The notes beneath the pieces are model-generated. The model worked only from the letters and a program-made list of their open reading frames with translations. It searched no databases and was not told the DNA's origin. A DNA stretch of 64,000 nt. Origin: Pocillopora damicornis. Taxonomy: Eukaryota. Where the stretch lies: assembly GCF_003704095.1 (NCBI RefSeq), contig NW_020846824.1, positions 248,001 to 312,000 of the forward strand. Reading direction: 5' to 3'. Positions within the stretch are counted from its first letter, which is position 1. Every line of letters starts with the position of its first letter. The position numbers and the translations under genes are program-made. Positions 52,301-60,117 of this stretch are shown one piece after another.

Positions 52301-53440
52301 CATTAGTCATCTTCACCATACATAATTCAAGTTCCATGGGAATTTCTTGCTGAAAGCAGGCCACTACACTAGAAAAATAGACATGTTTAATTTGGTGCTT
52401 CCCCTCCACTATCCCATGTCCAACTAAAATTATTTATTGATGGCCAGGTGGGATTTTCTACCACATCATTTTTCCACAACAGAAGTTGATAATGGGCTCT
52501 CAAGATTGCTTTTTGAAGAGTAACCTGGGTCAAGGGCAACCTATTTGACTGGGCTTGTTTCTTCCTAAAAAGCAACCAACTCGGTTCTGTCACAGACAAC
52601 ATTTCGGGGAGATTTTGGGGAGATAAAGTTGACACACAAATTTCTTGATTGAAGCCATAATCTCAATTCTGGGAATCACTACTGCACCTCCAAGCTCAGA
52701 AAGACAAATGATGATTTCAGTTTCCAGGAAAGTCTTCCAGCATGTAGCATTCCCTTTTCACAAAAAAGAGCCAGCGTTGTCTGCTCCACTTTTAGCAGGG
52801 GAGAGGGGGGGGGGGGGGTGGCTGCCTTTTTTAGGGCATAATGCACAAAAACTTGCTTGACAGCAACAAAAGGGATGATCTTGCAAGACTTGAATAATGT
52901 CTGGGAGCCAAGATGAATCAGCCTTTCGTTATGTTTCAAGGAATGAAAAGGAGAAAGGAGGGAGGAGGGTTTGGGAATGGAGGGGAAATGCTAAATTAAA
53001 TATGTGCATTTTTCAGCGCTGTAAAAATTTTTCCTTCTCTACAAAGTTTAACATTAACTAACATAACTGTCCAGTTTAACAATATCTATTTCATTATACT
53101 TCATACTTTGTGAGGTACTCCTGTACTCCTGGAGTGTTTTGTTCAATATTTCACTGTCGTTGATTTCATCATCCTCCGAAGACTCTTCAAACTCGTCGTC
53201 CAATTTCTCCAAATACTTTTTCGCAGATTCTTTTATTTTATTCGCCTTTTCCTGTCTTTCTCTGGACACTTCAGTTCTTTGGGGAGACTCTCCATTATTG
53301 GCCACAGCGCTACTTGAACTTCCCCATTTTGAAGAGGAAGGAAGTGTACCTACATTTCGTCCAGTCGGCTTTGTACTGTTTTGCTCGTTTCCACGGCCAC
53401 GTCCCCGGCCTCTCCCCAGAAATAGTGGCCTTTTATTCAT
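31366..53440 (-). CDS. NFXL1: NF-X1-type zinc finger protein NFXL1
   Basis: Exon 1 53440-53107 (RG-rich, acidic); exon 2 51993-51887 ([13 protein letters not shown]); 13.4-kb intron; exon 3 38443-38313 ([27 protein letters not shown]-like). Many NF-X1 finger exons follow between 38152 and 32105 ([39 protein letters not shown]). The last exon 31536-31366 encodes a basic stretch and a C-terminal TM ([22 protein letters not shown]), which distinguishes NFXL1 from NFX1. Confidence 0.92.
31570..31920 (+). mobile_element. CORE-type SINE-like element in the last NFXL1 intron
   Basis: Same core and tail as 27057-27412, so it was inserted before the segmental duplication. Confidence 0.6.
35366..35720. 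mobile_element. Interspersed repeat insertion (GACAGAATTGGACT.. head) in an NFXL1 intron
   Basis: CpG-richer island in an AT-rich intron, with an internal direct repeat ATCGGGCTGGTGATAA (x2). Family assignment is from recollection only. Confidence 0.45.
39890..40972. mobile_element. Non-autonomous DNA-element-like insertion with AAAACCG arrays at both ends and a nested short inverted-repeat element (about 40516-40632)
   Basis: AAAACCG(A/C) arrays at 39910-39980 and 40740-40955; internal GTGTAGCC...GGCTACAC inverted pair. The block is absent from the homologous flank of vWA copy B (39760-39890 ~ 43725-43857; 40975-41200 ~ 44030-44250). Confidence 0.6.
42238..43491 (+). CDS. vWA(MIDAS)-papain-like protease protein, copy A (3' part lost in gap)
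   Basis: ATG at 42238, just after a TTTAG acceptor (5'UTR intron). Motifs [12 protein letters not shown] (DxSxS), [10 protein letters not shown] and LFVLSDGDP. The uninterrupted ORF runs into the gap at QEKQEGH, the start of the protease domain. Confidence 0.85.
44802..46016 (+). CDS. vWA(MIDAS)-papain-like protease protein, copy B (3' part lost in gap)
   Basis: ATG at 44802, after a TTGCAG acceptor. Motifs [22 protein letters not shown] and [12 protein letters not shown] is open up to the gap. Confidence 0.85.
46117..48039 (+). CDS. vWA-papain-like cysteine protease-Zn ribbon protein, copy C (gapped; the only copy with a visible C-terminus)
   Basis: Fragments 46117-46296 and 46515-46742 are homologous to copy B. 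47138-48039 encodes [12 protein letters not shown] (Gln..Cys 47263), FGHAVVL (His 47629) and [17 protein letters not shown] (Asn 47677), then CPRC-x16-CPKC. Confidence 0.85.
48398..48460. repeat. Poly-A/C simple repeat (AAAAAC)n
   Basis: Directly visible; absent from the paralogous flank at about 50190. Confidence 0.9.
48680..49735 (-). mobile_element. Degenerate Mutator/MULE-like transposon end with a transposase C-terminal fragment
   Basis: The minus strand encodes [48 protein letters not shown] (TNNxxEGWHxxxN MULE-type motif), with an upstream stop. Subterminal TTCGCAC repeats lie at 48685-48770. Homology to the paralogous flank (49836-50395) ends at about 48675. Confidence 0.65.
50418..50574. 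mobile_element. Near-perfect ~157-bp palindromic MITE-like element flanked by TA repeats
   Basis: Arm ATATATGTTATTTGCCGGCTGGGAGGTCCGTATGGTGAAAAACTGTGACCGAGGTCTTGAAAAT is followed by its reverse complement. Both strands give the same spurious ORF. Confidence 0.9.
52390..52860 (-). mobile_element. Frameshifted relic of a transposon-associated ORF in NFXL1 intron 1
   Basis: Fragments [19 protein letters not shown] and [35 protein letters not shown] resemble the GxD..F.GKGK..W and LPPT..L..RA.YQ..W motifs of a widespread invertebrate mobile ORF family. The relic is broken by stops and frameshifts; superfamily not assigned. Confidence 0.5.
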
Positions 53441-53667
53441 TTATGTTTCTATATAGAACTTTCAACGCCGCATTTTCCTCAAATCAATAACAAAGACCGA
53501 GAAGTTATTTCTTTATCAACGACAATGTTCGACGCTCACGAGAGCGCACACGAGAAAATTTCTTAAATCTGAGCCTGATGTAAGCAGCGGCTTGTACTGC
53601 AACAAATATATATGTCATGTAATGATATGTGAACTTTTTGACAAACGCTGATTCACCACAAAGTAAC
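53441..53667. promoter_or_regulatory. Bidirectional promoter between NFXL1 and the PUB-domain gene
   Basis: Only 227 bp separate the divergent ATGs. CpG-containing, with AGCGCACACGAGAAAAT at 53543-53559. Confidence 0.7.
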
Positions 53668-56360
53668 ATGGCTTCCAACTCTGTACGTCTTGGTTTCGAT
53701 TTAGATTTTGTTACGTTAATTTTATACTCGTAAACTTGTGGTCTGTAATTTTTTGCCTTTGATATCAACCTAGTCGAATGCTGTTTTCATTTTATTTCAC
53801 AGGGCGGAAGTAAGCTTGGAGAAGGAGAAAGAGAACAATCCTTGATTTCATCACTGGAATCGCTTTGTAAAGAACATGATCGTGAAACTGCTCGAAAAGC
53901 GATAGAAACACTATTAACACTGGCTAAGTAAAGCTATAACTATTTAATATTTAGAGGATTTTTACGGTTCATACTCTCACAAGCTTGATGTTTAACTCGT
54001 TTTCCACTACTTTGTTTGATAGCTTGTAGTTAAAGCTATGCTGATAATGAGTACGTGCTTTAAAATTTTAGGAAAGTAAAAATAAGGAGGACTGTTTTGA
54101 AGGAAGACTTTCTGGACCATAATGGGAGGTTGCAACTTAAATGTCAACAGCGACTTCCTCTGTCAAAGATTTGAGTGTTATTTCATTTGTTAATTGATTT
54201 ATTTAGTTTTTACCTATCATCTGACATGATATTACAGGGTTGCGTCTTTTTTTCCACAGTAACATAGTTAGATCTCCAACAGATGAAAAATATCGAAAGG
54301 TTAAAAAACAAAACAAGTCATTTTCTGTAAGAGTGTGGCAGCTAGCAGAAGCTCAGGAGTTTCTTTTCAGTTGGGGGTGGCAGGAGGTACTGTGTAGTTT
54401 ATGTGAGAATTAAATAAATACCACAAAGTTAAATTTCAAAAAACTAAAATAAGGCTGATTTGAATTTTTGTTAAAAGCAAAATTGTCTGAATTTGTCTTT
54501 AGGATAATGACCATGTTGTTCTTCCATCAGATGAGGATGTTCAACTTGTTAAACAAATATTAATGAAGAAATTGAAGTAAGCTTCTTTGTGTGTTGGTTT
54601 GTTGTTACCTGACTTATACAAACGCTTACTCTCCTACCATGATGTAAAGAATTAGATTTTTCTCCCATGAGATTGCACCTTTATCCACAGAAACTTTACT
54701 TTCCTTTTTCAGCAACATTCCTTCAAGATCAAGTTCAGGAGCAGCCTCTAATTCTGAACCTGTAAGTCATCAACCTTTTTTTAATTTTGCCAGATTGTTT
54801 CAAATTGATCTTCTTTTAGAACAATGCTCAAGTATATTAAATTTTCTGATATTAATGCTGAGAGACCAGAGTTTTGGAGAATTCTCTGCTCACTAAGCAG
54901 AATTCTGTAGCTAAGTTCCAATGGCCCAAGTTATTTTTCAGTTATCAAGGAGGTAAGTTTTGAAAGAAACTATGGTGTTGCATTGGTGGGAGAGGATAAT
55001 AGGGTAATTTAGGTTTATCAAATTAGTTGATATCATAAATTGGCCACCATAAAGAGTTTCAAAGCTGACGTTTCAAGCTTTAGCCCTTTGTCAATTACTC
55101 CGACAAAGGGCTGACTTCATTCTAAATGGCATGGCTCTCATGGCAAGTATTCGTAGAAACCTTATGGTTTTAGTGCCATCAAGAAAATGCAGTAATATTG
55201 TTTTGTTCATAGTCACAAATGTGTAATACCAACCCTTGAAGCTTGCGAGGTTGATTTTCATTTAACAAAAACAGCTTACAGAGAGAGAAAGACAATTACA
55301 AGAGGAAAGAAGGAAAGTTTTGGAAAAGAAAAAGTTTGAGGATCAGGAAAAAGCAAGAATCAAAGCACAGGTAGAAAAAAAAATTCTCATTTATATCAAG
55401 GAGGAAGTTCTCTAATTGTTGGAGATAGAACTGGGTCCGTCACTGGGTATATAACTTTGCTCTGTTCATGTCTAACTTGCACACAGATCCAGGCTGACAG
55501 AAAGAACATAAAAGACAGGGAAATGAGAGAGTCAGTAAGTACCAAAGTGGTTAGAGTGTCTTCAACTTCTGCTTTGAATAAACCTTGTAGATCTCTATTG
55601 ATTGTATCCTCTCACAGAGAGCAAGAAAACCGGAAAAATTTGGTGGAAAAATAACCAAATTTGGGGACATTGGTGTGGATCTAAACAAGGTATGTGATAT
55701 TCATTAGACAAACTTCCATGTCTTCTAGAATTACAGTAAAAAAGTAAATGATTTACTCTATAAGTATCATTTTAATGTTATCAATTATTACACTGCACGT
55801 GGACTATACTTAGTCTGAATGGAGCTGCAAAAGCCAAGCTGGGTGCACACAAAATAAAATGTGTATGGTCTTTAGAAGAACAAGATGGAGTTAGTTAACA
55901 TAAGATTATAATCCTTAAGTAGTTGGATGTAGTAAGTCATTTTTTACTTCAATTGGTAGGTGTCTCAATCTGATTGGCCAATTTGCAGTTGTAGATAAGA
56001 GTATAGACAACACTGCATGGTCAACATGTCACGGAATTGTCGCATGCCAAAAGAATGGTTTTATTTGATATTATAGTAAAAAACAAAGTGAAAGTGTTTT
56101 AGCATGGTCTCTACCCTTACACAGGGGTCAAAATTTGGTACAGACTTACTCAGCTGCACTTCAAGAGACCACATCATTTTGACCACTGTGATTACAAATA
56201 TTGTTGTTGTTTAGAGTACAGACCATATCAAACCATTGTCAATTTGTCAGTTTGCAAAACTGCTTGACACCATCAGGTAGTTTAACTACAGAGAAGGTCA
56301 TGAAAAATAATTGTAATATTCAGATGTCTCTTGTATTTTCAGGGTGGAGGATGAGGATAA
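53668..56360 (+). CDS. PUB-domain + coiled-coil protein with penultimate selenocysteine (C-terminus GGGUG), ~207 aa; putative selenoprotein
   Basis: Exons 53668-53682, 53803-53927, 54260-54386, 54503-54576, 54713-54761, 55275-55370, 55487-55534, 55618-55689 and 56343-56360, all GT-AG and phase-consistent. PUB signature AIETLLTLANNIVRSPTDEKYRKVKKQNKSFSVRVWQLAEAQEFLFSWGW; charged helix ERERQLQEERRKVLEKKKFEDQEKARIKAQIQADRK. The last exon reads GGT GGA GGA TGA GGA TAA and a SECIS follows. Confidence 0.88.
54945..55115. repeat. Interspersed repeat (AAGCTGACGTTTC family); related copy at about 60600-60770
   Basis: 54955-55035 is approximately the reverse complement of 60688-60765, and both loci carry AAGCTGACGTTTC. 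Confidence 0.6.
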
Positions 56361-56419
56361 GTTTTCTCTTGATCCAAGTTCCAGGAATTCAAATAACTAT
56401 TTAAGGCTGCTACTGCTGA

Positions 56420-56486
56420 CCACAGCATATGACAACATCTCTGGAAAAGCTTAATAAAGCTTCAGAGATGTTTGATGAAGCTGGGG
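56420..56486 (+). promoter_or_regulatory. Eukaryotic SECIS element, type II
   Basis: Helix I CCACAGC/GCTGGGG. Core A-TGAC (56429-56433) opposite TGAT (56473-56476). Helix II AACATCTCTGG(A)/(T)TCAGAGATGTT. Unpaired AAA at 56445-56448. Apical mini-stem GCTT-AATA-AAGC. Confidence 0.9.
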
Positions 56487-57253
56487 AATACAGAATTTAA
56501 AATTTATTTCAATTAAATTGTAATGGATTGTTTTTACATAGGACTTCCATTTTCATTTGCTCTCTTAGACTATAGGAAATGGACTCACTGGTTTGGAAAT
56601 GTAATGTTGAGGGTAAATGTGATGTGAGTAAGGCCTGTTATAGACAACCTGCTTGTTTGCACCTAATAATGAAATGGGAGATTAATTACACAAAAACTGG
56701 AATTCTTACTCTTAAGCTCTGTGACAGAATAAACCAAACTGTTTTTGCTTTGTTTACTAGTTGTTTATTTTCAATACTTGGAATTATTTTTTACACAGCA
56801 AGATGGCAAACAGCTGGTTGAAGCTTTCAGAACTGAAAAATAAAACAAAAAAGTGGATGTTTGGTTCCAGGTCTAAAACCTTACTGGTAGATGACCTAAA
56901 ATTAAAAAGAAATAAAAAACAAAAACAAACGAATTCAGGATCTAAGTATGAAGGTACATATTAATTTCTGGATAGTCTCCCTAAAGACATTTTAAAATGC
57001 CCCTTCTTATAAAAGAGTGATATAAGGTTCTATTCCTGGAAAATCATGTTCTTGGACGATAATGGCCATGTCATTTGTACATTTCTCTGAGAACTGCCAT
57101 AATCAACTCTTCAATGAAAGGGAAAAAAAAAACAAACTTTCTTGCCAAATGTCAAAATTCTGAAAACTGATATAGCTTAGGTCCCATCCACCACAAAGCA
57201 TCCTTAATTATTTGGCTAAATCACAGTAAACATTATACAAATACCTGGTAACT

Positions 57254-60117
<2,864 letters not shown>

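Follow-up and report, generated by a model that had tools for sequence, protein, structure and literature searches.

In a 64,000-nt stretch of the Pocillopora damicornis genome (assembly GCF_003704095.1, contig NW_020846824.1, positions 248,001 to 312,000 of the forward strand; hereafter the window, with coordinates counted from its first letter), we found a nine-exon gene on the (+) strand, at 53668–56360, whose reading frame is interrupted by a single TGA shortly before its end. We interpret it as a genuine Pocillopora selenoprotein gene, encoding a soluble PUB-domain protein with a Gly-rich tail that carries selenocysteine (Sec), and we put the probability of this full explanation at about 0.82. 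The narrower claim, that the gene encodes Sec, is very likely correct. The arrangement on which it turns, with one or two codons, a true stop and a selenocysteine insertion sequence (SECIS) element behind a UGA, is conserved from sponges to molluscs and protists.

A spliced gene with an in-frame TGA and a downstream SECIS element

The initial annotation, made from the letters of the window, had proposed nine short phase-consistent exons, a last exon reading GGT GGA GGA TGA GGA TAA and a complete type II SECIS 74 nt after the TGA. The gene model holds: the exons join to 624 nt in frame, all introns are GT..AG, and the last coding exon has exactly this reading at 56343–56360. All eight splice junctions were present at the predicted GT..AG sites in RNA contigs assembled from four runs of four studies (three poly(A) libraries and one cDNA library) and placed on 53400–57000. 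Such contigs show the spliced form of a transcript, and its ends, strand and abundance cannot be read from them reliably. The acceptor at 56343 is used and the contigs extend past 56486, with single contigs that extend from the last junction, across the TGA and the SECIS, as far as 56785 or 56835 (56341–56785 in run X8, spliced to upstream exons, and 56341–56835 in run X1). Because the contigs are continuous from the last junction through the hairpin at 56421–56485, this hairpin belongs to the 3′ untranslated region (UTR) of the spliced mRNA. Across the four RNA data sets, the last coding exon and the hairpin were free of reported sequence variants; variants flanking the hairpin were seen at 56395, 56499 and 56517.

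The hairpin matched the Rfam family SECIS_1 at 38.5 bits, and no other Rfam match in the 64-kb window, which contains 1113 N, reached gathering level on either strand. All the parts expected of a type II element are present in its fold, namely helix I, the ATGA core (56429–56432), a helix II of 11–12 bp, an unpaired AAA, a 5-bp mini-stem and the GA at 56474–56475. The fold has a z-score of −3.7 relative to shuffled sequence, and the ATGA lies ~75 nt downstream of the TGA, in agreement with the position first proposed. Two tRNA-Sec genes with the anticodon TCA (77.8 bits) were found in the genome (234 Mb in 4393 contigs), and on the basis of these genes, together with the SELENOS-like and SELENOK-like loci considered below, the genome appears to have the capacity to decode Sec. 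Premature termination at a UGA in a last exon escapes nonsense-mediated decay; as the UGA of this gene sits in the last exon, termination there would not trigger that decay.

The TGA and the SECIS element are conserved in relatives

We searched exon 3 against 1.8 billion representative proteins and followed this with a profile search and a metagenome scan, the last of which added two loci. The exon 3 search found PUB proteins of ~200 residues. Orthologs came from corals and an anemone (Pocillopora verrucosa, P. meandrina, Porites, Orbicella, Acropora, Desmophyllum and Nematostella), sponges (Corticium and Halichondria), molluscs (Potamilus and Haliotis), annelids (Paralvinella and Owenia) and the brachiopod Lingula (a partial model), as well as from one MMETSP alga and several metatranscriptome eukaryotes. 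All of the full-length annotated orthologs that we examined end at ...GG(G).

The DNA behind this annotated end was compared at 12 loci: the window, a second coral, Nematostella, Potamilus, Haliotis, Paralvinella, Corticium, Halichondria, the MMETSP alga and three metagenome or metatranscriptome eukaryotes. These are orthologs and hence not strictly independent of one another. All 12 loci have TGA as the annotated stop, with neither TAA nor TAG at that place in any of them. The next codon or codons are GGN (nine loci), CGN (two loci) or GGG-CGG (the MMETSP alga), after which comes TAA or TAG, never a second TGA. An intron lies immediately 5′ of the final Gly codons in 8/8 genomic animal loci. 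That a stop codon and its 3′ UTR should stay fixed over such an evolutionary span would not be expected unless these positions were translated.

A SECIS or SECIS-like fold was present downstream of the TGA in 10 of the 12 loci. In seven orthologs (Nematostella, Paralvinella, Corticium, Halichondria, the second coral and two metatranscriptome loci), Rfam SECIS_1 gave sub-threshold matches of 22.7–29.4 bits on the sense strand, ~55–345 nt after the TGA; no other SECIS_1 match appeared in the 47 kb of ortholog DNA scanned at E ≤ 10. The Potamilus element, which is SECIS-like, was recovered by a pattern scan and by a home-built model that the Potamilus sequence itself had helped to build. That of Haliotis has a textbook fold (−31.7 kcal/mol) and a weak score of 15.4 bits by the home-built model, and the Rfam scan of the Haliotis locus gave no SECIS match. 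Our first home-made pattern scanner was crude and missed most of the elements. In a MAFFT alignment of seven SECIS elements, the ATGA, one A of the AA motif and the GA were invariant, and helix II showed compensatory changes at 10/10 pairs. Pairing in helix II reached 87%, compared with 62% in shuffles and 29–46% in slid-column controls, and the observed value was attained by none of 500 shuffles on four of five measures and by 3 of 500 on the fifth.

These comparisons bear on an alternative in which an ordinary PUB protein ends at the TGA, the downstream hairpin resembles a SECIS by chance or has some other role in the 3′ UTR, and GGA-TAA serves as a back-up stop. Such a protein would fit the public annotations, which end at GGG, the presence of just two codons after the TGA and the failure to find a Cys homolog. 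It is difficult to reconcile, however, with a TGA that is never exchanged for TAA or TAG in 12/12 loci across sponges, cnidarians, molluscs, annelids and protists, with a next codon that is always one for Gly or Arg and precedes a stop other than TGA, or with a sense-strand SECIS that lies closely downstream in most loci and has changed in a compensatory manner at all ten pairs. The window's own SECIS scores above the Rfam cut-off and is unique in 64 kb. Taking these points together, we regard an ordinary stop as very improbable.

Several observations nevertheless weigh against reading the gene as a selenoprotein gene. The transcript support consists of contigs and not of reads. The truncated product ending in ...GGG may also be made, and would be almost identical to the full one because only two residues are encoded from the UGA onward. 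Most of the SECIS elements in orthologs score under the Rfam cut-off. In the MMETSP alga, ~380 nt of 3′ UTR searched with Rfam and with the home-built model held no detectable SECIS, and the most that the distant metagenome locus L037 offered was a non-canonical candidate of GUGA type, 36 nt after the UGA. Finally, Cys-containing homologs are the usual supporting evidence for new selenoproteins, and none aligned at the Sec position was found among the ortholog search matches, in which sensitivity was limited and deuterostomes and ecdysozoans were poorly covered. The C-terminal module used alone as a query (residues 140–205) likewise returned no Cys forms, and all the carriers that it found had a PUB domain. 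The initial annotation had suggested all three of these comparisons in relatives. The TGA, with one or two codons and then TAA or TAG behind it, recurred at 12/12 loci; conservation of the SECIS held at ten loci and did not extend in canonical form to the MMETSP alga and L037; and the search for Cys homologs came back empty among the ortholog matches. Apart from the absent Cys homolog, the evidence makes up the standard comparative case for a selenoprotein.

The metagenome scan contributed one coral locus and one distant locus, and its remaining matches were PUB-only; the ESM Atlas gave low-score leads only (0.78–0.81), to haptophyte and chlorophyte clusters. The distant locus (L037 701–1300) is an intronless homolog with 25% identity on a 33.8-kb metagenome contig, and its protein ends ...D-I-G-V-D-L-N-S-Q-K-K-G, followed by TGA CGA TAA.

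The product is a soluble PUB-domain protein

The product has 207 residues including Sec and ends Gly-Gly-Gly-Sec-Gly. It is laid out as a PUB domain (~residues 15–115), a disordered linker, a charged helix (~residues 134–181) and a conserved, disordered Gly-rich tail. The full-length Pfam search, the structure model and the complex prediction were done on the public ortholog P0044, which is identical at 202/205 residues (98.5%). Exon 3 alone matched Pfam PUB (PF09409) at E = 5.5e-13 (49.1 bits against a cut-off of 34.3), P0044 at full length matched it at 75 bits, and the full-length orthologs matched PUB and no other Pfam family. In the AlphaFold2 (AF2) model of P0044, built from a 12-sequence alignment, the PUB domain was predicted confidently, with a predicted local distance difference test (pLDDT) score >90 over ~residues 15–115. 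The best Foldseek matches of this model were the PNGase PUB domains 2hpj, 2ccq and 2hpl (target-normalised TM-score 0.83, root-mean-square deviation 1.5–1.6 Å, ~35% identity), with UBXD1 next, and a profile of the family matched PNGase and UBXD1 PUB chains at ~1e-12.

Outside the PUB domain, the best conserved part of the protein is its C-terminal 45 residues. Helix 134–181 has 18 Lys and Arg and 11 Asp and Glu and contains no Cys, and the Gly-rich tail is likewise without Cys. The maximum 19-residue hydropathy is 0.3, and hence there is no membrane segment. The initial description, of a soluble protein without a transmembrane segment that joins a PUB domain to a charged helix and a Gly-rich tail ending Gly-Gly-Sec-Gly, is thus borne out by the Pfam match of exon 3, by the hydropathy and by the sequence itself. 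Cys is absent from the conserved C-terminal module of every ortholog, and from the whole of the algal protein, which would leave Sec as the lone nucleophile there.

We next consider what the PUB domain might bind. Only PUB and PUL domains are known to bind the p97 tail, an attachment that places them at the D2 face (PMC6995525, PMC10641518), and it is at this face that the PUB domains of PNGase and UBXD1 hold the C-terminal Leu-Tyr-Gly of p97 (PMC10641518, PMC6995525). In PNGase and UBXD1, binding depends on a YxxN(x)9Y pocket together with a K/RxxN motif, which grips the free C-terminal carboxylate (PMC6995525). In the coral protein the pocket residues N48, Y58, K62 and N65 are kept and correspond to N41, Y51, R55 and N58 of PNGase, which contact Tyr805 and the free carboxylate (PMC6995525). 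The K/RxxN motif is formed by K62 and N65, of which the Asn is nearly invariant in the family and Ser in Acropora; the second pocket Tyr, Y58, is Phe in some members. The p97/VCP of Pocillopora ends DDDLYS (L032 936–1055, contig C653), where the vertebrate protein ends DDDLYG, so that the Tyr of the tail motif is kept. Counting on the other side, the family departs from YxxN(x)9Y, since the first Tyr (Y38 in PNGase, Y181 in UBXD1) is L45 here and Leu, Ile or Met in 12/12 aligned members; in UBXD1, the Y181A substitution weakens binding ~8-fold. A complex prediction with P0044 residues 10–118 and the last 39 residues of Pocillopora p97 scored 0.24, the mark being 0.34, and was counted neither way. 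Judged from these sequence comparisons, p97/VCP has about an even chance of being the ligand of the PUB domain.

Another alternative is a real selenoprotein that does not bind p97: its PUB domain could recognise some other Tyr-containing tail, or another surface, and the Sec tail could act in a pathway unrelated to p97. There is precedent for other ligands, since the PUB domain of HOIP binds OTULIN and SPATA2 and that of SPATA2 binds CYLD, and the loss of the first pocket Tyr in all members would be in keeping with a changed partner. On the other hand, the four residues that match ligand contacts in PNGase are kept, in structure and in sequence the nearest matches are PNGase and UBXD1, whose PUB domains bind p97, and not HOIP or SPATA2, and a Leu can still line a hydrophobic pocket. 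We consider a ligand other than p97 possible, if rather doubtful.

In the charged helix (exons 6 and 7, 55275–55534), we also noted the string R-x5-x-A-x2-R/K (R-I-K-A-Q-I-Q-A-D-R-K). It resembles the VCP-interacting motif (VIM), whose consensus is RX5AAX2R, and as the likeness is only degenerate we do not claim a VIM. A functional string here would allow the protein to contact p97 at both of its ends, like UBXD1.

A possible role at the p97 exit

If the selenoprotein reading is correct, the parts of the protein suggest how it might act. The PUB domain would dock on a Tyr-containing C-terminal tail, most likely that of p97/VCP, and docking would put the protein at the D2 (exit) face of the p97 hexamer. 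PNGase is thought to act on emerging clients at this same exit. The charged helix could then serve as a spacer, from which the flexible tail would hold out a single, strongly nucleophilic selenol close to the unfoldase exit. The targets of the selenol there might be thiols or disulfides of unfolded clients that emerge from p97, or p97 itself. Such chemistry would be intermolecular, as has been proposed for SELENOK, because a conserved Cys partner is missing. A redox role of the tail at p97 is put forward here tentatively.

A broader proposal, which we hold to be speculative and on balance doubtful, is that the family is an ancient third p97-linked selenoprotein, soluble, and kept in less-studied animal lineages and in some marine protists. 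It would dock at the D2 exit face through its PUB domain, and its lone Sec would reduce or capture thiols and disulfides of clients, or keep a redox-sensitive cysteine of p97 reduced. On this proposal the protein was lost in, or has never been reported from, vertebrates and ecdysozoans.

Gene features and genomic surroundings

The features of the gene are collected in Table 1.

Table 1. Coordinates in the window of the exons, proposed Sec codon, 3′ UTR and SECIS of the selenoprotein gene
Feature	Coordinates	Strand	Remarks
Exon 1, coding part	53668..53682	+	Starts with ATG and encodes MASNS; junction 53682>53803 in RNA contigs of 3 runs
Exon 2	53803..53927	+	N-terminal helices of the PUB domain; junction 53927>54260 in 3 runs
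Exon 3	54260..54386	+	Core of the PUB domain; ligand-pocket residues N48, K57-Y58-R59, K62 and N65
Exon 4	54503..54576	+	End of the PUB domain; both junctions in 4 runs; AF2 model of ortholog P0044 with pLDDT >90 to ~residue 115
Exon 5	54713..54761	+	Ser-rich linker, predicted to be disordered (model pLDDT <50 at residues 120–131)
Exon 6	55275..55370	+	First part of the long charged helix; modelled helix 134–181
Exon 7	55487..55534	+	Part of the helix with conserved Q-I-x-A-D-R; I163, A165, D166 and R167 invariant in the 12-sequence alignment
Exon 8	55618..55689	+	Conserved basic, Gly-rich tail (S-K/R-A ... F-x-D-I-G-V-D-L-N)
Last exon, coding part	56343..56360	+	GGT GGA GGA TGA GGA TAA, giving Gly-Gly-Gly-Sec-Gly-stop; junction 55689>56343 in 4 runs
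Proposed Sec codon, in-frame TGA	56352..56354	+	Same place in 12/12 related loci
3′ UTR, extent supported by RNA contigs	56361..56785	+	Candidate AATAAA, read from the sequence, at 56728–56733
Type II SECIS	56421..56485	+	Rfam SECIS_1, 38.5 bits against a gathering cut-off of 35

Within the tail encoded by exon 8, residues S178, A180, F193, D195 and G197 are nearly invariant in the 12-sequence alignment, and the region is disordered in the model. At the end of exon 2 (53921–53927), two RNA runs carry a variant with six different letters (AGCAAA) and an unchanged acceptor at 54260, which probably represents an allele or a sister species. Intron 5 contains a stretch, 54973–55093, at which contig depth is very high and many different loose ends occur in 4/4 RNA runs; the pattern is like that of an interspersed repeat with transcribed copies at other places.

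The gene for ribosomal protein S3 (RPS3; 57254–58052, (−) strand; Pfam Ribosomal_S3_C, E = 1e-17) lies in convergent orientation to the selenoprotein gene. At ~56790–56900 the depth of RNA contigs rises abruptly, and an identical loose end, beginning GTAACTCTACAATCC, occurs at 56835 or 56897 in 4/4 runs; this loose end is probably the next exon of RPS3. The shared loose end and the depth jump therefore indicate that the 3′ ends of the two genes nearly abut or overlap. On the other side of the selenoprotein gene is an open reading frame of 128 aa (53054–53440, (−) strand), which encodes an Arg-Gly repeat and an acidic stretch and for which Pfam gave no convincing match. It is arranged head-to-head with the selenoprotein gene, ~230 bp from the ATG, and RNA contigs cover 53400–53520; this arrangement may reflect a bidirectional promoter.

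Neighbours of the PUB gene were also noted in relatives. At the Nematostella locus (L011, on DS469573.1), the upstream neighbour has a faint zf-NF-X1 Pfam mark (1–319), and the 3′ part of a small-subunit rRNA, a 5.8S rRNA and a run of N occupy 1–1423, ~1.6–3 kb upstream of the gene; these rRNA pieces are probably an oddity of the 2007 Nematostella assembly. In both sponges (L013 4814–5280 and L014 1–578), a HECT E3 ligase gene adjoins the PUB gene, and that of Halichondria also has an AZUL domain, making it UBE3A-like.

Relation to described selenoprotein families

Selenoproteins are systematically mis-annotated because their UGA is read as a stop, and the animal list has gained few families in recent years. 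The NCBI and UniProt entries of the present family that we examined, some of which are named 'PUB domain-containing protein', are all cut two residues short; the truncation at GGG-stop that the initial annotation expected of standard pipelines is what the public entries contain.

A PUB selenoprotein has been listed before. An algal survey (Jiang et al. 2020, BMC Genomics 21:699; PMC7539508) includes 'PUB: PUB domain-containing protein' among 42 families, without claiming it as new, and in the sections of the article drawn on here 'PUB' is absent from the 19 families also reported in animals. The algal family resembles the coral gene in that both are PUB-domain selenoproteins, and in the same sections it is known by name alone, without sequences, Sec position or function (PMC7539508). 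The MMETSP algal ortholog (P0068) matches PUB at E = 4e-10, and its tail reads D-I-G-V-D-L-N-K-G-G-G and then TGA-GGG-CGG-TAG. Because this ortholog shares the coral-type tail and the TGA, the animal genes and the algal 'PUB' selenoproteins most likely form one family, as far as sequence can tell.

Among animal surveys, one from 2012 that covered six invertebrates, including Nematostella, Lottia, Capitella and Amphimedon, has no PUB family in its tables and places the SelS of Nematostella on scaffold_211 (PMC3473315). The Nematostella PUB gene lies on the 997.5-kb scaffold DS469573.1. Going by the accession numbering, this would be scaffold_67, which does not appear in the table of the 2012 survey. 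A vertebrate survey of 2026 was confined to known families (PMC13134290), and a broad literature search on coral selenoproteomes returned nothing relevant. The PUB selenoprotein is missing from the animal selenoprotein lists examined in the literature, and the description that suits this family best is that of an animal branch of the algal 'PUB' selenoprotein family, which has been named but not characterised. The novelty first claimed for it stands in part: the family is not among the animal families of the 2012 survey or of the consulted sections of the algal one, but a PUB selenoprotein family had already been listed for algae (PMC3473315, PMC7539508).

The family adds a soluble member of PUB type to the p97-associated selenoproteins. 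It makes it possible to ask by experiment, in tractable animals such as Nematostella, why the machinery of p97 and endoplasmic-reticulum-associated degradation (ERAD) has repeatedly been linked to a C-terminal Gly-Gly-Sec tail, and it supplies a new profile for selenoproteome tools. For coral stress biology, it offers a candidate link among selenium status, redox stress and protein quality control.

Comparison with SELENOS, SELENOK, PNGase and PNG-1

Two known selenoproteins invite comparison with the coral protein. SELENOS is a single-pass protein of the endoplasmic reticulum membrane whose VIM binds the N-domain of p97. Its other features are a long helix, a Gly-rich disordered tail with the ending Gly-Gly-Sec-Gly, a Cys that partners the Sec, and a UGA near the true stop codon. 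SELENOK, also membrane-bound, ends GGUGR, has a lone Sec without a Cys partner and is linked to p97-dependent ERAD. The lone Sec of the coral protein is unlike that of thioredoxin reductase, which stands next to a Cys in a Gly-Cys-Sec-Gly end. SELENOS has been listed as a p97 adapter (PMC10641518).

The coral protein shares with SELENOS the C-terminal Gly-Gly-Sec-Gly, which is a resemblance of the tail only. It differs in being soluble, in bearing a PUB domain (the type that binds the p97 C-terminal tail), in having no conserved Cys and in lacking Pfam similarity. With SELENOK it has in common a lone penultimate Sec, a Gly-rich disordered tail and the absence of a Cys partner, and the algal ortholog even ends GGG-U-G-R; SELENOK, in contrast, is membrane-bound, has no PUB domain and shows no sequence similarity to the coral protein. 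The initial annotation had called the tail SelS-like. This is right for the Gly-Gly-Sec-Gly ending, but the C-terminal module lacks a conserved Cys partner in every ortholog, and for that reason the tail comes closer to that of SELENOK.

We asked whether the gene could be a diverged SELENOS or SELENOK in which the membrane anchor (and, for SELENOS, the VIM) was swapped for a PUB domain, the helix and the Sec tail being homologous. A common layout of charged helix, basic Gly-rich disordered tail and penultimate Sec speaks for such an origin, as do the GGG-U-G-R of the alga, which recalls the GGUGR of SELENOK, and the fact that all three proteins would connect to p97. Yet in nine full-length orthologs neither the SELENOS profile (PF06936) nor the SELENOK profile (PF10961) found a match, even at E ≤ 10; the membrane anchor of SELENOS and the membrane segment of SELENOK are absent, and of a VIM there is no more than a degenerate string in the helix. 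The genome also has a separate SELENOS-like locus (contig C21) and a separate SELENOK-like locus (contig C3382). For the former, no C-terminal end and no SECIS were found within the 3 kb examined, and our claim is for this reason limited to the existence of a SELENOS-like locus and does not extend to its coding for Sec. Moreover, the C-terminal module was found solely behind PUB domains, the conserved Cys partner known from SELENOS is absent, and a short Gly-rich tail is too simple to prove homology. A diverged SELENOS or SELENOK is accordingly unlikely, in line with the initial view that the gene is neither, and we retain the reading of a separate PUB selenoprotein.

By sequence and fold, the best matches of the coral protein are the PUB domains of PNGase (NGLY1) and UBXD1 (UBXN6), with which it shares the pocket Asn, the second Tyr and the K/RxxN motif. 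Transglutaminase, PAW and UBX domains are missing from it, its first pocket Tyr is replaced by an aliphatic residue, and the module that partners its PUB domain is the Sec tail. Because those domains are absent, the names 'peptide-N-glycanase' and 'UBX domain-containing protein 6-like' given to some family members at NCBI are misleading. A redox module joined to a cofactor of the p97 pathway has a precedent in C. elegans PNG-1, which has a thioredoxin domain in place of the PUB domain and combines oxidoreductase with deglycosylating activity (PMC6429583). In PNG-1, however, the redox module is a thioredoxin fold with Cys that replaces the PUB domain, whereas in the coral protein the Sec tail accompanies it.

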